Assembly: GCA_025558095.1 (NCBI GenBank)
Contig: JAIVFI010000003.1
Coordinates: 62,001 to 126,000 of the forward strand
Direction of reading: 5' to 3'
Origin: Hyaloraphidium curvatum SAG 235-1
Lineage: Eukaryota > Fungi > Monoblepharomycota
DNA: 64,000 nt
Shown: positions 1 through 42,029 of the stretch, in pieces
Position numbering within the stretch: position 1 is the stretch's first letter
Layout: every line of letters begins with the position of its first letter
Program-made: the position numbers and the translations under genes
The notes under the pieces: model-generated
Databases searched by the model: none
What the model was told of the DNA's origin: nothing
What the model saw: the letters and a program-made list of their open reading frames with translations, nothing else

Positions 1-3000
1 GGACCTGCCGGCAACAACGACCGCAACGACCGTTAGAAGTCGTCGCAGGGGCGGTAGCGCCACCCGCACGGCTGCTGTGAAGGCCGAGAAGGACAGCCGC
101 AAGCCGGTCGAGATTCTCAAGCCGGCGCTGGTGGAGACAGGCAAAGGGATCAGACCTGCTGCCGTTTTCAAGCCTGGCCAAATGGGAGCATCTGGGGACT
201 CGGTGAGTACTTTTCGCGTGGCCCACTGGTCGCGAGCTTGAGTGATTGATTTCCACGGCCGCCAGACGAACACCAAGGCGAACGTGGGCTCCAAGAAGAC
301 CGGCAAACAAGCGGCGTCGAACAAGTTCTTCCAAAAGCTGAAGAGCGGGGTTGACATCCCTGTTGTCGGCAAGGTGACCCTGGCTGTCCCGGCGCGCTCA
401 CGGGCACCGAACTAACAGTCCACCAGGGCATCCTGCTCGGGAAGGTCGACCGGAACAAGATGTTTGCGCTCGCAAAGGAGGCATGGATGGCGGCTCCGAA
501 GAACAACCAGTGCCCTCCCGGCCAAGAACCCTTTGGTTCCTTGGAGAATGGAGGCTTCTGCTGCGCGGGCCGCGTGTCGGCCGACGGGAAACGGTGCGAC
601 GGTTCCTTCTGCGGCTTTCCAATCACCCCGAGGCCGGCCGGTGCCAAATGGAGCTACTGCTTGGGAATGACGCGGATCAGCTGTCCTGCGGGGTATTCGG
701 CCTACGCAGGTACGTTCCTTTCGAGGCAACACACCATGACCTGCTCACGCGCTCGCACTTGCAGATTTCGAGGGCGGAATGTGCTGCAGAGGGAAGATTC
801 GCAACAGCGGCACGACCTGCGAGGGGAAAGCTTGTCGGCCGACGGCGGTGAGCACATTTCTTTCGCGTGGTCAACGAAGTGTCTCATTCGCTCTGATCTC
901 TGCCTTTGCAGAACAACCGGAACTCGGCTGAGCCGACCTGCAACTACGCCGACGCCTCGGATCTCGAGTCGGGAGCGGATTCGCTGGGCACCGTGTTCTC
1001 GTCGCTCCAGCGCGGCGAAAGGACTTCTTCCGGGACGAACTCGAGCTTCGGCCCTATTGATCCGAAGCTGATCACCAACTACGTCTGCCCTTCGGGATCC
1101 GTTCCTTTCGGAAGCGAGACCCGCGGCGGCTTTTGCTGCAGCGGACAGGTTACTGTCGATCGCCTCAAGTGCGTCGGTGGTTCGGTCTGTGCCTTCCCTA
1201 GCAACGGCAAAGCTACGGACACGGGCATCTGTGCGGGTGGCTCTCGCTACACCTGCCCCGTGGGTTCCATCCCGTACGACGACATTGGTGGCGGTTTCTG
1301 CTGCTTTGGCAGCCTCGACCGAAAGCGAGAATGCAGCGGCACTTTCTGTGCTTTCCCCACGAACCCTGCGCCCCGCGGCGTTGCTATCTGCTCGGGCATC
1401 ATCACCAGGGACACGAGCGTGTTGCGGGATCCGTCGGCGACTTCTTTTTCGGCCGTGCAGCACGCTCTTGGGCCGACGACTCCGGACTCCGTCTCTGTCT
1501 CTCCTTTTGACCGGGGCGACATCTCTCTCCGCTGTTCCGGAATCACGGCGGACTTCAGCAGGCGCGTCAGCGTCCGCGTTCCCGGGATCAAGCTTTCTTG
1601 GAATCGGGCCCGCCCGGTGACTAGTTTGCTGCTCGGCGAGGCCGACTTTGATCTGCCGCAGGAGATGGGCAAGCTGCCGGAGATTGCGCACATCCACCAC
1701 GTCGCCATCGACTTTGATCCTCTCCCGAAGCTCGACACGGGACGGGTCATCGCCTCGATTTCGGACATCTCGTTGGACGATGATTTCCAGCTAGTCAATG
1801 TGACCGGGACTGTGTCCTACGACTCGGGAGTGGGCACGTCCTTCGACCTGGCGGGGAGCGGTCTTCTTCCGGTTTTCCGCGGGGGCATCGGCTTCAACAT
1901 GCCTCTCATCTCGGACGCCGACCTCCTGCCGCTCGTCTTCGCGACGCAGCAGCGAATGGTCACCGTCGGATCGTTCCTGTCTGACGTCAAGGCCGATGGC
2001 ATGGTGAAGGATCTGCCGCCGATTCCTCTGCTCGGCGGCAGCGTGCAGGACTTGATGGCCGTGCAGGTCAAGGAGGTCGTCATCACCTTCTGCAAAGCAG
2101 GCGCGGCAGATTGCTCGACACGCCTCGCCGTCAACGCGCTCATCCCCGCCAACATGTCGTCCTTTGACGGCGGAATGCTGCCCATCTCGTTGGACTCGCC
2201 CAAGGCTCAAATTGGAATCGTTGATCCGTTCCTCAAGGCTCGCCGAATCGACGCCAGGGTGATCGGCCGGTGGACGGTCGCGGGGGTACCCCTCACCCTG
2301 ACCGTGCTTCGAGCCCCCTCGAACGCCTCTATCGACCTGACGGACTTTTCGAGCATGTCCGAGGGGGACGCACGACTACGGCGCCGCGGCACGGTGGACC
2401 AAGAGTGGGAACTTCAGGATGTCGACGACGTCGAGGACTTCGATGCCGATCCCGAGGACGATAACGTGCCCAGTGACCTGTTTTCCCCTGATTCCTGGGT
2501 CTGGTTTCCGGACGCGGACCACCTCTCGAACCGCTTCTCGTTCTTCGACCTGCCTCTTGCGCACGTCAACCATCACATCTACGTGCGAGGCGCTTCGCCT
2601 GACGGTTTCGCAACAAACGCGAGACTTGGCCGGCGACAGGAGCAGGCGGAGGCCGCTGCGAAGCCGAAGCCGTCGACCGCCCGCGGCCGGAAGAAGAAAC
2701 CGTCGCCGAGTCGTGCCAAGTCCCCCAAACGGAAGCCTGCCCTCCGAGCTCCCCGTGGAATTGCCGGGAAATGGCTTGTTTCGGCCCAGGGCCCGACGAT
2801 GGAACTGGACAGGCTCCTGGCCGCTTTCTCTGCCGACGTCTTTCCTACTGGTGAGCTGCCTCTATCATCGCTGACCACCGCCTGACTCTGACATGGCTTT
2901 CAGGTCCAATTGCGTCCGTCATCGATACAGCGGGATTCAAATCGCTGGTGATTGACAACGTGACCTTAACCGTCATCCTGGAGCAGAACGAGGCGTCAGT

Positions 3001-6000
3001 TCGTTTCGTTGGCCCGACGAAGATACTGCCGAACGCGACCGCGCAAGTTGTGGTCACCAGGCAGCGTGGTGGATCCTTCTCGGGCTTGATGGCTCTGGCG
3101 ATGGACGGCGAGCTCTATCCTGCCGTGCTTGGGAGATTGGTTCCTGGCTTTGTCATTCGGGACGTGGATCTTGTTGCTGCGGGCCAGACGGTTTGTCGTG
3201 TGCGGTTCCGCGCCTCCCTTGGCTAATCGTTTCTCCTTCTCCTCAGATGGCGGTTCTCATCTCGAACAAGGAGCTCGTCCTGACCAACACCCCCTTGGCT
3301 CTTGACCCACCTCTGGATTTGGTCATGGCGGTCAAGAAGGGACTCGAGCTCAACGTCCGGATGCGCTTGCCGCGCGACTGCCTCGGGAAGCCTTTCTGCG
3401 AGGTCATGAAGACGCTCCTCGGAGACAGCACGCCGCTCCAGGTCAGCACGGTGGTGAATCCTCCCGACGTCACCCTGTCGGCTTCCGTTGCGGACATTCG
3501 GATCACCAACGGGCTCGTGCTCAAGGGCGTGCGGTTCTCGGCGTCGTACCCCAAGTCGCGCGTCATGCTTTCGGGGAGCCTGCAGATCACGGTCGACAAG
3601 GGCCGGCCTGCCTTGCTGCTCGACGCTAGCATCGAAATCAGAGGTTCGGGGGTGATTCTGGGAGCAACGTTGCCGGGCAGTTGGGACAATGCTTTCGGGC
3701 TGGACCGCATGGCGGTCGGCAACATCCTGCTCGACGTCGGGATCAACGCCGCTCTGGGGGCCCCGTACATCATCATCGGGGGCGACGCGGCCTTCGGAAA
3801 GAAGTGCATCGGCTCCTCCGGGCAATTTGACCTCGGCAGCTCCTGCTTCGGCGGACCGATGTGAGTTTTGTGCTGGACGTGGAAGACTTGGCCTCACCAT
3901 GCCGTTCCACCAGCTATATCTCCGTGTTTCCGACCGATCCCAAGTTGAATTGGTGCGCGCCGGCGACTCGAATGCAGTCGATTTCATTGCTCATCGGGTC
4001 CCACAGGTTTGCCGGCGAGATCAGCAACCTCGACCTGAAGCGCATCATCACGGCCTTCGCCGACTACGTGCCGACGCAGAAAGACATTCCCGCTCCCGTC
4101 CTCAACGCCGTGTTCCCCGGCAAGGTCACCGTCTCGTACTGCCCGTCTGGCGAATGCTCGGTGCCCGGCAAAGCCTACCCGCAAGGACTCTGTGGGTGCC
4201 GACGCGCGCTCTCGACTCTGATGCCGTTGCTGATGGCTCGCTCCCGCAAATCCTTCTGCAGACTTGACGGGGTATGTTTTGGCAGCTGTCGATGAGGTTC
4301 GACGTTTCTGACCATGCTCTCCCGCAGTTCCCTGGGCATTTTCGACGCGCACGCGCAAACCGACATCCAGGTCGTGCCCGGCAAGAGCATCAAGATCGGC
4401 GTCGACATGAGCTCCCTCACACTCGCCGACGGCCTCATCCGCGCCTTCTTCAGCAAGTCGGACCGGACCCGCGGACCGAGATTCCTCCTGGAGCTCGAGT
4501 ACGACACCATTTCGCCCATGTCGGTCAAGCTCGACTGCTACGTCAAGGTTCTCGTGTTCGAGACCAAGGCCGAGATCACGATCTCGCCAAAGGTTCGCCG
4601 CGGAACCCGTCCAGCCCCGTGCTGAGCTGACGAACCTTAACTGCGCAGCGCTATTTGGTCGCCTTCAATGCGCAGTACTACAGCGTGACGGCCTCGTTCA
4701 TCTTCGAGGCCAGCGTCGGCGCCCGCCTCGGTGGGTCCCATTCTCGCCCAGTTTTCTTGGCGCGCCTGATGTCGTTTTCCACAGACTTCGTCGTCTCCGC
4801 CGGCTTCGACATGACCACCTTCCAGCCCTTTGTCGACGCCGTCTCGGCCGCCGCCGCGCGCTGGGCCTCCCAGGGCGCGGAGCGCCACCGCGCCGTCAAG
4901 TCCCGCGCCGACGCCGCCCGCCGCGACCTCCTCGCGCGCCGCGAGGCCGCGTGCGACTGGAGGGAGAAGTGCAAGGTCGACGCGCAGGACGTGGAGTGCG
5001 GGGAGGAGTCGGGCGGCGTCCAGCGGAGGTCCGAGGGCGGGGAGGAGGGAGGGGCGGCGAGGCTGGGGAGGAGGCTGGAGGACTTTGGCAAGTGGCTCAA
5101 CGGCAAGTTCGTCGATGCGCAGAGCCAGCCGCGCCGCGTCAAGGGCGGGAACACGGTGACGGATCGCGTCAAGAAGGGCTCGTGCAAGGGCTACATGTTC
5201 TCTTCGGGTGGGTTCTTTGTTGGATCCTGATTCGCGGGCTCTCTGACACCCGCCGCAGGCTCGATTATCGACGTCGAGTGCCAATCCCGCTGCGCCGCCG
5301 CCCAGGGCGGCATCGACCTCGCCTCGGCGGCCCTGGCGTCGGCCAACGCGGAGCTGGCGGACCTGCCCGAGGAGCTGGGCTCGGCGTCAACCATCGAGAA
5401 CTGGATGGGCGACAAGCTGGCGTCGCTGGTCAGGTTCCGCGCCGCGGGTTTCGGTCGGTGCCCGTTCGTCCCGCGGCGGTCCAATGGCTGACCTCGTTGT
5501 TCCTCAGCCGCCAACGTCGACGCCACGTTCAAGGCCGGCATGATGGCCGGCGTGGTTCCCATCCGGTTCAACGCCACCATCTTCGGCGACTCTGTCGAGG
5601 CCGACTTTCTGTTCAACTTCAACGACGTCCCCGCGACCGCGGCCTCCTTCTTCGACATCCACGTCAAATCCCGCGCCGCGCGCGCCGCGGCCGCCGTGCG
5701 CCTCGCGGAGCGGGACCTGGCGCGCGTGGACGCCTTCGACTACGGGCACTTCCGCCTCGTGCGGCGCAACCCCGAGGGGGGCGAGACGTTCGACCGCGAC
5801 ACCCGGATCGCGGGGCTGCCGGAGCTCGAGGAGCTGCACGTGCTCGAGGAGAGGCAGGAGGCGGCGTCGGCGACGAGCCGGCGGCGGAGGGGATCGAGGA
5901 AGAGCGGGTCGAGGTCCGGCCGGCGCACGCGCAGCGGGACCAGGACGGGCGGCCGCAGGGGCAAGGCCACGGGGTCGACGGACGATCCCGGTGCGGCGAT

Positions 6001-36969: not shown

Positions 36970-39900
36970 ATGCCTTCTTCGGAAGATTTGCCGCCCGCCG
37001 TCGCCGCCCTGCGCGCCTCCCCGGACCTCCTCCGCGACGTGGACCTCGCGGCCGCGCCAGGCAGCCCGCTGGCGGCATTCTGGCTCGGCGCCGTCGGCGC
37101 GGATCGCATCTCGCGGCACATTGCCGCCTCCCGCGCCGGCACGGCGGTGACGGCCACGCTCTGCGGGCGGACGGCGCTGGGCGGCCCCTCGGGCGTGTCG
37201 TCGTCGGTGCAGGGCGGCGCGGCCGCGGGGATCCTGGTCCAGGCGATGGAGGACGCCGCGGCGACGGCGGGCCTGCCGGAGGAGTGGGGATCCTACCGGA
37301 TCGCGAAGCTCGGGGTCGTCTACACGGCGGGGGTGCCTGGTCCCGGATGGGTCGCGGCCGAGGGCGAGGTCGTCCGCACGCCGGAGGGTTCGAGCGAAGC
37401 AGTGTCTTGCAAGGCGCGGATCGTCGATCCGGACGGACAGGTCTTGGCAACCGCCACCTCCGAATGGACGATCAAGGAGCCCGGGCTGGCGTTGCGACGC
37501 CTCGACACCGCCCACGCGCCCCTCCCTCCGCAAGTGGCCGTCTCCATCGCCAAGTATGGCGAACACAGTATTCGCATGGTGGCCACCAAGCTGCTCCACA
37601 GCATCGCCCCGAATTTCGTGCTAGGGCGACCCCGAAACCCACTATTACAACCACTACGGGCGGCACTACATGGATCTGCGGCGCCGTCGTCATTTTCGAG
37701 TGGGTCGCCTTCGCCGCTCCGCACACACGCGGACCGCCTGAACACCCCGGCCGGACAGCGGATTCCTCGCTTCCATGACCATGGTCCACAGCAACAGCCT
37801 GCTCGCGACGGCGTTCCTGGACCTGGAATTTTCGCCCCGTCGGCCGAAACGGGCTCCGGGTGGGTGCACGGCACGGGGCGGGTCACTGGCACTGAAGGCA
37901 GGAAGACGCACTCGAGCGCGACGTTCGTGGACGGGGAGGGGAGGGAGGTGATGCGGGGCGCTGCAGTTCGCCGGACGTGGCTTCCCTGGCAAGGCCGCCG
38001 ACCGGCTGTCGAGCGACGTGGAGGTCTTGGACCCCAAGGAGCCCTGGGTGGAGGCGGAGATGGGCCGCCTCAACCACCGGGAGCCGTACGGGGACCATGA
38101 CATTCCAGACCTCCCCGCCGCGGCCACCGTGGCTGATGCCTTCCCGGGTGCTGATGATGAGGAGACGCGGGTCAAGATCTACGACCTGCTCCTGCAGAAG
38201 CTTGGCACGACGGGCAAAGGCGTCGATGGTGTGTCCTACCGCCGGCTCCTCCGCCAATTCAACTGCCGTGCGGACGCCTCTCGGGTACGCTTCCACACGC
38301 CAGTGAAGTTCATCGAGCTGGTCTTTTCCGGCACCTTCCTCGCACCCTCCCTGCGGAGTTGGATCTCCACGATGAACGGCGTCGCGCTCTCGAAACCAGG
38401 CCGGCCGGGAACTGGGCGCCCCATCGGGATTGCCCTCTGTCTGGTCCGCCTGGCGGGATCGTGGATCGTGGACTACTTGAAGGAACACGTCTCACCCGAC
38501 TCTGCCAACTCGGACGGCTTGCGCTGGCTCCTCCATGCCGACGACCAGGGCTCCTACGTCCCCGATGGTCCGGCACTCCTCTATCGCACGATCCAGGCCT
38601 TGCTGGCGATGGACCCGGAGCTGGTGGCGCTCAAGCTGGACCTGAGAAACGCGTTCAACTGCCTGCCGCGGCGTCTGGTCTTCCGTTGGGTTCGCCAGTT
38701 CCCCTCGCTGATTCCCTTCTTCCGGACCTTCTACGGTGGGCCATGCCGGATCATCTACCGTGACATCCTGGGCCAGGCAGTGTTCTTCGCCGTTTCGGCC
38801 GAGGGCGTGATCCAGGGCATGTCGGAGAGCGGGGTCGTCTTCGACGTGGTCTACAGTTTCCTGTTGGCAGCAGTGCGTGCTGCGCACCCGGCGACACGGA
38901 TCCTCACCCTGCACGACGACACCTACATCCTGGGCCGCCCGGCAGCCGTCGTTGCCGCGTACGTCTCGCTGCTTGAAGTCCTGGAGGAAAACCAGCTGGC
39001 TGTCCAGCCCGGCAAATCCGCGCTGTACGTGGCCGACATCGCCTCGCTCCTCACCCCGGTCGAAGGCCACGCCTCGCTGGCTACCTGGGCCTCGGCCACG
39101 GGCATCCCGTGCGTTAACGAGGCTGCCAACCCCGTCGAGCGCGGGTTCCTTGCTGGTGGACTCCCTGTCGGCTCCCCTGAGTATGTCGAATCGTTTCTCA
39201 AGCAGGCATGCAACTCGACCATGGATCTGGTTCGGACCGTGGTAAACAAGTGCGAGGAGTGGCCGCTCGAGGTGGGCTTCCCAAAACGCCACGGTCTTTA
39301 CACCGTGCTTCGCCTCTGCGTGGCCAGCCGCCTCATCCACGTTGTCCGTGGTCTCCCTCCGCGGTTGACCATCCCCCACGTGGACGCTGTCGACTGGTGC
39401 ACCATGCGGGGCCTACTTCTTCTTGCGGGCCACGGAGAGCTCGCCGCCCTGCCCAACGCGCGTTGGCAGTCTCACAGCCTGCTCCGCCAGCTCCGCCGCC
39501 GCATCTTCCTCTGGCTCGATGGCGGCGGCATCGGTTTCTTGGAACTGGCCCGGCTCGCACCCTTTGCGTTCGTCGGCGCCCACGCGCTCTCTGGCGTGCG
39601 GTTACGCCGCCTCATTGGGCTGCGCCGGGCCGGTGACTCCTACACCATCGCGGAGGACGTGCTTAGCCGGCTCACCGCGGACCTGGACCTTGCGCTCACC
39701 GCAGTCCGTGGCGCTGGGCTTGCCGAGCCCGTGCTTGCCTCGCTCTCCGCGTCGGGCATCGAGCTGTGGATGGCTTCCATCGGCGCCAAAGGCCTGCAGC
39801 ACGAGTTGTACCGGGCACAGCTGGCCTGGATCCACCAGGCCATTCTGGCGGACCTTCCCGCGGGCTCCCAGCAGCGCGCCATCTGGCTTAGCGTCAAGGC

Positions 39901-40893
39901 CGGCCACTCGGGTGCCTGCCTGGGTGCGCAGTGCTTGGAGAAGGGCACCGGCCTGGACGACGAGGCGTTGCAGCTGAACATCTGTACCGACCTCGGTCTC
40001 CCTGCCCCTTGGCTCTCGGCCCTACCATCGCAGATGCTCTGCCCGCTCGGGTGCACTGTCGACGACGGCAGTGGCAGGCAGGTCACACGCATCCTTGCGC
40101 CGCGGGGAGCCGACTTCCTGCACGCCTTCACGTGCCCGATAATGGGCAAGGTTGCGCGGCACAATGCGCTTGAATCTGCGTTGGCGGATGAGCTCAAGGA
40201 CAAGCTCGCCTCCCGTGGCGTGGTCGTCGACCGTCGTCATCGTGGTTACCTTGAGAATGGGTTCGTGCCCAAAGACACCACACTTGCACGAGCCCTGGAC
40301 ATCGGGAAAACCTCGACCGACATCGTCATCCGCCGCGTGGGCGCTCGTTCTGACCTCGTCGACGTCACCGTTGTTACCCCCAGCGTCACGGCCTCGCGCT
40401 AGACGGACTCCCGCAACGAGACCTCGCTCCTGCGCCGCGCTGTTCAGAAGAAGGCGACGGCCCTTGCCAACCAGTTCTACGTTCCCGATCCCCCCGTGCA
40501 CAACCTCGTTTGGTTTGCGGTCTCGACCTTCGGCCGCCTGCACGACGTGGCGGACGAACAGCTCCGTGTTTGGTCTCGAGAGATCTCTCCCCCGCGCACC
40601 AAATCCGACGGCAAAGACTGGGATGTCGATGGTCTCATGGCCCGCCAGACCGGCCGTCTACGCGCCGTTGTTCAGCGGGGGCGCGTACTGGGTTGCCAAC
40701 AGCTTATGAACAGGTTCAAGGAAGCCTGTACCCGGCAGCTCGGCGGACATCTAACCCCTCCCCTCTTCCCCGAATTCAATGTATATGGCGTGACGTGATG
40801 TATCGGGGTTGGGGGGCGCTCAGCGCCTGTGATAGAGATCTGATGCGGGGTTCGGGCATGTTTGTGGCGTTCGCGCCGATGCCGAAGCTTTAG
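36970..40893 (+). pseudogene. Double hotdog (PaaI-like) thioesterase gene interrupted by a retrotransposon
   Basis: VQGGAAAGIL..KLGVVY..ARIVDPDGQVLATA. The second domain ..GRKTHSSATFVDGEGREVMRG resumes after the insert as SGMFVAFAPMPKL* (40851-40893). An additional frameshift lies near 37830. Confidence 0.8.
37959..40840 (+). mobile_element. 5'-truncated non-LTR retrotransposon, CRE-like (RT + CCHC + restriction-like endonuclease), 10-bp TSD
   Basis: Frame 37961-40798 with one internal TAG (40400-40402). RT motifs GVDG, RPIGI, KLDLRNAFN, GVIQG, LHDD, GLPVGS, GGIG; then CPLGC..HAFTC, RHN, TD..VDVTV, FAVSTFG. TGATGCGGGG at 37949-37958 and 40841-40850. Confidence 0.92.
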
Positions 40894-42029
40894 GTCCTGC
40901 GGACCGGCAAAGGGGCGGGGTTGCAATAGAGCCCGTAAGGGCACTTTTGCGTGGATGCGACCTCAAGGAGGATGCTGTGATTGGGAGGCTAGAATATGAG
41001 GCGCCTTCTTCCTTCCTCTCAGGATCGCATTCGGCCGGAAGCACTGGTTGACGGATTTTGGCCGTGTGGCAGACCCAGACCCGGTCTGCCCGTACACGTC
41101 ATCACGGGGATTGATAGAGCCTCCCTGAGGATCCGGACGCGGGCATGGACTCGTGGATCGGGACTTGGGTGAGCTTCGGGGGACGATCTTGGGTAGCCGA
41201 TCCGTAGGCGCCGATGTATAGGCTCAGGCACGGCTGCGCCTCATCAGGCACCACTACATTTCGTTGGCCTCTTTTCCTTTCGCCTCACGGCGGACAGCTC
41301 AGACTACTCCCGGTCTGGGTCTGTCACAGCCGACTCCCACTACTCGGGCTTACGGTCTGCATCATCGAGTCACCTCCGACATTTTTGCACACGCCCCGAG
41401 GGGGGACCAAAGAGCACGCCATGCGGCTTTCGACGAAACCAGGCAGCCGCAGCGGCCGGGCTCTCGGCCGCCGCTACCTCACCGGCCGGAGGCGCGCGCG
41501 GGCGCTTCCCGACGTGCGCTTGCCGCCCCCCGCTGGCGCCACTTTCCGCGCCGCGGCACCACATCGACCGTTCCGCACTTTCCGGCCGGTGGCGCGTTTT
41601 GCGTCGGCGGCGGCGAAGCCCGCGGCGAAGCGGCTCGTCGGCCCCTGCGGCGGATATCGCCCGGCCCGGAGGAGCGCGGCGGCACCGTCGCTCGACGACC
41701 CAATAATTCGCGATCGCCATTTTATGATCCGCACGCCGTCTTGAAGTGCTTTTGGACAGGCTCCGGAAGGGCACCGTTTTAGGCTCCGTCGGGCGGGGGC
41801 TGGGGCAGGCGGGCGCGTTTTTCGGGCCTGCACCCGCGGGCTTGCAGCTGAGGGAAGGGGCCCGCGATCGCCCTCCAATTGGAGCAAGAGCATCCCTCGA
41901 TCGCGATCGTGCACGGCCGGGCCGGGTTTCGAAGGACCGGTCGGACCCCCGCGGAGCGCAAACGGTGGTGTCAGGCGGGCCTCGGGCCCAGAACACGCCA
42001 GGCCCCGCCCACCGGGACGAGGGACCGCG

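Follow-up and report, generated by a model that had tools for sequence, protein, structure and literature searches.

Non-long-terminal-repeat retrotransposons that encode a restriction-like endonuclease (RLE) are the oldest long interspersed nuclear elements (LINEs) and are under development as site-specific gene-insertion tools; for these elements, the central question is how the target is picked and how synthesis of the complementary DNA (cDNA) starts. The R2-type enzymes recognize their target sites through protein-DNA contacts. Locus specificity prevails among the known RLE clades, Hero, EhRLE and YURE being the non-specific exceptions (PMC4640811, PMC3636483). Having just one open reading frame (ORF) is typical of RLE-type elements, all known CRE elements generate a target-site duplication on insertion, and MoTeR inserts in telomere repeats, the classic members of the CRE clade in spliced-leader genes (PMC3636483). 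Here we analyze an element of this type found in a 64,000-nucleotide stretch of the genome of the fungus Hyaloraphidium curvatum SAG 235-1 (contig JAIVFI010000003.1, positions 62,001 to 126,000 of the forward strand; hereafter the window, to which all coordinates given without a locus or contig refer). The segment 37959-40840 is, with a probability of about 0.9, a dead-on-arrival, 5'-truncated copy of a young family of R2-group RLE-bearing non-LTR retrotransposons that later acquired a nonsense mutation. This figure covers the identity of the segment and the history of its insertion; the observations themselves are footprints of the process, from which the mechanistic steps considered below are inferred.

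A preliminary description of the window, made from the letters alone, had noticed a 10-bp direct repeat around 2882 bp, and both the coordinates and the 3' end common to 44 other copies in the genome bear this out. The repeat, TGATGCGGGG, is present on the plus strand at 37949-37958 and again at 40841-40850, and its left member starts with TGAT, the target word of the family (see below). The chance of an exact 10-bp repeat at that position is about 1e-6 and, given that the 3' boundary at 40840 is fixed independently by the 44 other copies, an exact repeat at both ends of the insert is not accidental. The final GG of the left repeat is the same dinucleotide that the full-length element carries just upstream of the truncation point, so the duplication in the window is counted as 8-10 bp, the 2 nt in question being microhomology at the junction. 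When 37959-40850 is removed, script translation of the joined sequence gives ...GEGREVMRG followed by SGMFVAFAPMPKL and a stop in one frame, as the preliminary description had maintained for the removal of the insert and one repeat; the insertion took away the last 13 codons (ending PKL) of the host ORF. The insert terminates in ...GGCGCTCAGCGCCTGTGATAGAGATC, without a run of A, and from its first bases to 40798 it contains a long frame, the sole break of which is a single TAG at 40400-40402.

The start of the window copy in the middle of an ORF, also recognized earlier, results from ordinary 5' truncation, given that a 4615-bp copy with two open frames is present on another contig (locus L031, 4048-8662, minus strand). 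This copy, the sole full-length one found, reaches 1733 bp further 5', is flanked by an 11-bp duplication, TGACGCCGTCG, and consists of a 95-nt leader, ORF1 (279 aa), ORF2 (1213 aa) and a 42-nt 3' untranslated region (UTR); elsewhere in the genome, the upstream part of the element is represented by two short relics only. The stop of ORF1 overlaps the start of ORF2 in a shared ATGA (4 nt), and a 4-nt overlap of the two ORFs recurs on the 4.5-kb contig of an environmental relative with 45-46% identity. Searches of Pfam and NCBIfam assigned ORF1 to no family, and it showed no similarity to the upstream ORF of the 46%-identical relative. The window copy (plus strand) corresponds to positions 1734-4615 of the full-length element with 99.76% identity (7 substitutions) and begins in the second base of ORF2 codon 268. 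Codons 269-1081, which comprise the reverse transcriptase (RT), the linker, the CCHC knuckle and the first half of the nuclease, occupy 37961-40399 according to the frame comparison and the match to the Pfam family RVT_1. One of the seven substitutions converts Ser1082 (TCG in the full-length copy) into the in-frame TAG at 40400-40402, which cuts the nuclease between D1069 and K1099; codons 1083-1213 with the TGA stop follow at 40403-40798, and comparison with the full-length ORF2 places the 3' UTR at 40799-40840, in agreement with the 42 nt noted previously.

The earlier identification of the insert as a non-LTR retrotransposon combining an RT, a CCHC knuckle and an RLE is supported by the domain analysis of ORF2. 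The RT core, with the active site LHDD, is located at 38393-39028 (plus strand) and matches RVT_1 with 31.5-32.7 bits, above the cut-off of 29.6; its R/P, D, G..QG, DD and K residues are invariant in 39 relatives. C-terminal to the RT, the CCHC zinc knuckle (C962, C966, H989 and C993; 40040-40135, plus strand) is invariant or nearly so in alignments of 39 and 75 sequences and aligns with the CCHC of the solved R2 proteins, and the core of a PD-(D/E)XK restriction-like endonuclease (H1002 of an RH motif, D1055, D1069 and K1099; 40160-40453, plus strand) is delineated by a profile match and a fold model. The only other Pfam signal in ORF2 comes from sub-threshold C2H2 fingers near residue 55; at the N-terminus of the protein, which is outside the window copy, a finger of the form C-x2-C-x11-H-x4-H is conserved, as is a second cluster of the form C/H/H/C. 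In the Pfam searches, neither ORF1 nor ORF2 produced a match to Exo_endo_phos, the apurinic/apyrimidinic endonuclease (APE), at E values up to 1, and no Myb domain was detected in either protein.

The proteins closest to ORF2 are two environmental sequences with 45-46% identity, and all others are about 20-25% identical. Most of the 4403 proteins that an exhaustive profile search retrieved at E<=0.001 come from contigs of environmental eukaryotes; the sole named relatives are gene models of the green alga Closterium. In a sample of 159 proteins, mostly best matches of the profile search, the C-terminal domain is present in 117, many of them with the signature C-x2-C...H-x3-C...RH(N/D). In the 39-sequence alignment, the invariant positions are the catalytic residues of the RT and all four ligands of the CCHC knuckle, together with a His, two Asp and a Lys, and the series C, C, H, C, H, D, D, K is also invariant or near-invariant among the 75 sequences. 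A search of the PDB with the single ORF2 protein or with a three-sequence profile gave no match, and R2 was reached only with the 39-sequence profile, which matched the solved R2 proteins at 1.8e-38 to 1e-24, with separate stretches for the RT (5e-27) and for the CCHC-nuclease region (6e-9, aligning CCHC, RHN, PD, DVT and K); the same profile matched L1 ORF2p over the RT only. When the C-terminal 295 residues of ORF2 were modeled with AlphaFold (predicted local distance difference test, pLDDT, 86.7), the top seven Foldseek matches of the model were R2 structures, all with probability 1.00, followed by PD-(D/E)XK nucleases of other kinds. Taken together, the profile, conservation and fold matches to R2 make the membership of the element among the RLE-bearing (R2-group) LINEs well supported. 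It has an RT with xxDD, a CCHC followed by a PD-(D/E)XK domain C-terminal to the RT, no APE match and the footprints of target-primed reverse transcription (TPRT); the two ORFs of the full-length copy depart from the single ORF that is typical of RLE-type elements, although this is a typical trait and not a strict rule.

The search for further copies covered the 31.9 Mb of the assembly (55 contigs). With the insert as the BLAST query, 42 places were found; almost all of these matches share the last base of the query as their end but differ in where they start. A 22-nt pattern of the 3' end occurs in 45 places (0 for the reversed control), and a 14-nt pattern consisting of the tail plus TGA revealed seven further ultra-short copies. 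The family accordingly comprises about 50 copies, at least 44 of which have the exact end ...TGATAGAGATC; the 44 copies other than that in the window all end in ...GTGATAGAGATC, and in the BLAST search nearly all copies end at the base corresponding to 40840. The 5' ends range from element position 1 to 4596, and clean duplications of 8-13 bp flank about 18 copies. The common 3' end, the variable 5' truncation and the target duplications substantiate insertion by TPRT, as proposed in the preliminary description. The main copies are 98.4-100% identical, which is why we call the family young; older subfamilies show 80-88% identity.

Target words were counted over 44 distinct 3' junctions. The four bases that follow ...GATC are TGAT in 30 of these, TGAC in four, TGGT in two and CGAT in two, and 38 of the 44 words are within one mismatch of TGAT; against a background frequency of TGAT of 0.22% per position, the probability of 30 occurrences among 44 is about 1e-69. 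At 36 junctions, C or G follows as the fifth base, so that the usual word is TGAT[C/G], and no motif was detected further upstream of the insertion sites, except that C is absent at position -1. In the approximately 18 copies with a clean duplication, including the copy in the window (37949-37952), TGAT is likewise found at the start of the upstream member of the duplication; the word is thus present in both members and therefore belongs to the target, not to the element. Had only the 3' flanks been inspected, TGAT could have been taken for the true end of the element (...GATCTGAT), with duplications 4 nt shorter and independent of sequence, because most copies have it after ...GATC, as a longer element would show. 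This alternative appears highly improbable: no element 3' end lies beside the upstream member of the duplication that starts with TGAT, and a quarter of the copies have TGAC, TGGT, CGAT or other words at this place.

The insertion sites are dispersed, and their flanks are unrelated apart from the target word. The family thus combines dispersed insertion with the use of a strict short word, TGAT, usually TGAT[C/G]. The earlier proposal of insertion into ordinary genes with relaxed target specificity holds with respect to dispersal, the flanks in the window being single-copy, but not with respect to specificity, given the TGAT at 30 of the 44 junctions; likewise, on the question whether the copies share one conserved target, the short word is common whereas the surrounding loci are unrelated. 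Dispersed insertion by itself does not set the family apart as a new lineage, since RLE elements without site specificity have been described before (PMC4640811, PMC3636483).

The part of the element that is shared by all these junctions is compact. The last 30 nt, which consist of a G-run, the hairpin GGCGC-TCA-GCGCC, TG and TGATAGAGATC, are exactly preserved in subfamilies that are 12-16% diverged in the coding sequence, and the 3-nt insertion found in one subfamily is confined to the hairpin loop. In the window, the hairpin, the presence of which the preliminary description had reported correctly, is at 40815-40827 (plus strand) and forms a local stem of 5-6 bp that is kept in the diverged subfamilies. 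Nine of the 44 copies are only 20-24 nt long and stop in the loop or the 5' arm, as if reverse transcription often aborted at the hairpin. Shuffled versions of the 75-nt 3' region fold as well as the region itself (z=0.12), which is not unusual for its GC content; the support for the hairpin accordingly comes from conservation and the clustering of truncations, not from energy. The terminal 11-nt unit TGATAGAGATC (40830-40840, plus strand) is identical in nearly all copies and starts with TGAT, the same word as the target. Two copies, L006 and L018, carry two to three tandem 11-nt units, each starting with TGAT; L023 ends at an internal ...CTGTGA that is fused to a TGAC target, and L025 lacks the final C. 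The element had been described as tailless, which is accurate in that no copy has poly(A) but has to be qualified in that the terminal 11 nt constitute a unit that is tandemly repeated in two copies.

These footprints can be accommodated by the following sequence of steps. The nuclease would nick the bottom strand just 5' of TGAT (as viewed on the top strand), and the freed ...ATCA-3' end would pair with UGAU at the 3' end of the template, which would most likely be provided by a 4-nt read-through into the TGAT downstream of the donor copy; we would put the odds of this read-through pairing step at roughly even. The template RNA would then end in ...GAUCUGAU, as compared to ...GAUC without read-through, and the paired end would prime cDNA synthesis exactly at the last base of the element. 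Occasional pairing with an internal UGAU would give rise to the short L023 copy, and renewed pairing after one round to the tandem 11-nt units. cDNA synthesis would then continue, with frequent abortion, the top strand would be cut 8-13 bp downstream, and the 5' end of the cDNA would be joined via 0-7 nt of microhomology (the GG in the case of the window copy). Each new copy would regenerate TGAT after its end, so that the preference would perpetuate itself.

The principal alternative is that nicking by the RLE and the zinc fingers alone sets TGAT, with a template that ends in ...GAUC and priming that does not involve pairing with the target. Protein-DNA contacts are the established mode of site recognition by R2-type enzymes, whose solved complexes are matched here; furthermore, the C or G at position 5 (36 of 44) and the avoidance of C at -1 fall outside a 4-nt pairing and look like protein read-out, and the sole full-length copy found precedes TGAC whereas most copies precede TGAT. 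Nicking specificity by itself, however, does not predict the start of L023 at an internal UGA of the tail, the loss of one terminal base in L025, or tandem 11-nt units each beginning with TGAT, all of which are expected from slippage between the ...ATCA-3' primer and UGAU in the RNA. We therefore regard recognition by nicking alone as somewhat less probable than primer-template pairing, but as a serious contender.

Several observations weigh against the interpretation of the window copy and its family presented here. The flanks in the window are single-copy in the assembly, in which there is no empty paralogue or haplotig and no second copy of the flanks. About half of the copies come without a clean duplication, in some cases due to nested insertions of LTR elements or to rearrangements. 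The full-length copy is followed by TGAC and not TGAT, so that the TGAT-flanked copies may derive from another source. ORF1 is without a homologue, and its coding status is deduced from one open frame, the periodicity of the GC content at third codon positions (GC3) and the 4-nt overlap in the relative. Finally, the computations do not separate nicking specificity from primer-template pairing.

With respect to the clade, the family might be a member of CRE (that is, a relative of CRE1/2, SLACS, CZAR and MoTeR) without the former specificity for a repeated locus. The two-ORF layout recalls that of SLACS and CZAR, which also carry an upstream ORF, and an N-terminal C2H2-type finger is present. 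Target duplications are made as in all described CRE elements, and the clade has fungal representatives such as MoTeR (PMC3636483). Yet the nearest proteins come from environmental contigs at 45-46% identity, the rest are about 20-25% identical with Closterium, a green alga, as the sole named source, and the targeting of spliced leaders or telomeres that characterizes the classic members is absent at the 44 dispersed insertion sites, so that we consider this assignment rather doubtful. Less likely still is a deep origin, under which the family and its relatives (the 4403 proteins, mostly environmental, plus Closterium) would represent an RLE lineage outside the five named clades that chooses its sites largely by 4-nt pairing between the target and the read-through RNA, the 11-nt unit being a small re-usable template with telomerase-like slippage.

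Some of the other copies and relatives of the element have peculiarities of their own. Two copies on contigs C43 and C22 (L011, 2121-2958, and L012, 1950-2790, minus strand) share upstream sequence, and a chimera produced by template switching to a tRNA or another small RNA was considered but rejected as no tRNA or Rfam match was obtained. The shared sequence consists of the 3' end and the 466-bp long terminal repeat (LTR) of an LTR retrotransposon of about 10 kb that is inserted in, and splits, both copies; its 466-bp LTRs have at least 35 matches in the genome, and on C43 the halves of the split element have 4 bp in common, corresponding to the target duplication of the LTR element itself. 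At G000:C30:389962-390360 (L014/L060), a 369-bp and a 23-nt copy are arranged head to head around TGATC/TGATCA words; given that TGATCA is a palindrome with TGAT on both strands, this arrangement suggests double priming at one site. In L004/L030 (G000:C29:1934-4718), a 164-bp piece of the nuclease region is joined without a gap to the upstream side of a truncated copy of 2626 bp, both being oriented alike, and in L006, 18 nt of the 3' end are joined to the copy's own 5' junction; both rearrangements look like template switches during reverse transcription.

Older relatives are found at G000:C17:688917-690071, C9:164750-165136 and C1:528244-529138; among these, a fragment with 43% identity has an open frame of 437 aa, and the remaining ones are relics with 72-83% identity, of which one spans the 5' region of ORF2 that is missing from the window copy. 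A second RLE-type family (for example, at G000:C26:600157-601608 and C1:1440531-1441994) is more abundant, with at least 25 copies, is 31% identical to ORF2 over the RT and contains open frames of up to 1318 aa. On the contig of the 45-46%-identical environmental relative P0001 (L083, 3976-4020), the ORF2 stop is followed by ATCGGGGTT and ...ATAGAGA..., both common to the 3' UTR of the element, and then by TGAG, hinting that the family in this genome might be younger than both the compact 3' signal and the use of a TGA-type target; this comparison involves a single copy, the 3' end of which cannot be fixed.

The host ORF upstream of the insertion (36970-37958, plus strand) comprises 329 codons from the ATG and is the sole open frame in this region, with a coding-like GC3 of 0.79; its final 13 codons and stop (SGMFVAFAPMPKL-stop) are at 40851-40893 (plus strand), in frame with 36970-37958 after the removal of the insert and one repeat. 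The protein is possibly hotdog/4HBT-like: the match to Pfam 4HBT_3C (E=0.089, 13.4 bits) is below the cut-off of 24.1, and the feature similarity to the Atlas 4HBT clusters is 0.88-0.90 but with fewer than 170 shared features. A word search found no homologues, no match was obtained in the PDB or NCBIfam, and the single-sequence AlphaFold model (pLDDT 40.6) is unusable. The designations 'thioesterase' and 'PTS1-like PKL' in the preliminary description are thus plausible readings of this ORF by eye rather than findings. Just downstream of the host ORF, the 265-bp stretch 41065-41329 is a small dispersed repeat, with 94% identity on one other contig and fragments of 76-90% identity on four more.

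Overall, the element represents a new young family with a TGAT-anchored insertion rule but no new class of element, since dispersed RLE families are known. Its entire 3' recognition signal is compact, the 30 conserved nucleotides consisting essentially of the hairpin and the 11-nt unit. A target word of 4-5 nt combined with about 50 insertions amounts to a clean natural data set, in which the mis-registered and tandem-tail copies report on primer-template pairing. As for the host genome, the family has been recently active and is able to hit coding sequence.

R2 is among the closest of the described systems. The R2 proteins of Bombyx mori (R2Bm) and Taeniopygia guttata (R2Tg) (8gh6, 9dou, 9nl3) show the same order of RT, linker, CCHC knuckle and PD-(D/E)XK nuclease, R2 is matched by the profile over RT and nuclease alike, and it is also the best fold match. 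Both R2 and the present family perform TPRT from a precise 3' end that is not poly(A), with a structured 3' UTR, and in the biochemical work of Luan and Eickbush on R2, downstream target sequence on the RNA is said to set the start point. The differences concern the target, which is one 28S rDNA site for R2 and any TGAT[C/G] for the family, the N-terminal region, with a zinc finger and a Myb domain in the R2 clade as opposed to a C2H2-type finger, a second Cys/His cluster and no Myb match here, and the layout, with one ORF and a UTR of about 250 nt in R2 compared to two ORFs and a 42-nt UTR. Most R2 elements make deletions (PMC3636483), whereas the family regularly makes duplications of 8-13 bp.

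Compared by behavior and layout, the CRE clade (CRE1/CRE2, SLACS, CZAR and MoTeR) shares with the family the RLE enzyme, the N-terminal C2H2-type finger and the target duplications but targets spliced-leader genes or telomere repeats, in contrast to the dispersed unique DNA used by the family. The Hero clade, EhRLE3 and YURE resemble the family in combining an RLE enzyme with insertion that does not depend on a repeated target locus (PMC4640811, PMC3636483); unlike them, the family keeps a strict word of 4-5 nt at the nick, and the likeness to Hero pertains to the dispersed insertion behavior only. Frequent 5' truncation is seen in both the L1-type LINEs and the family, as are copies that are inverted or rearranged and 5' junctions with microhomology. 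L1 also prefers a short sequence at the nick, with which the RNA pairs by its 3' end (TTTT/A with poly(A)); the corresponding pairing word of the family would be TGAT. L1, however, employs an N-terminal APE nuclease and a poly(A) tail, whereas the family carries a restriction-like nuclease at the C-terminus.

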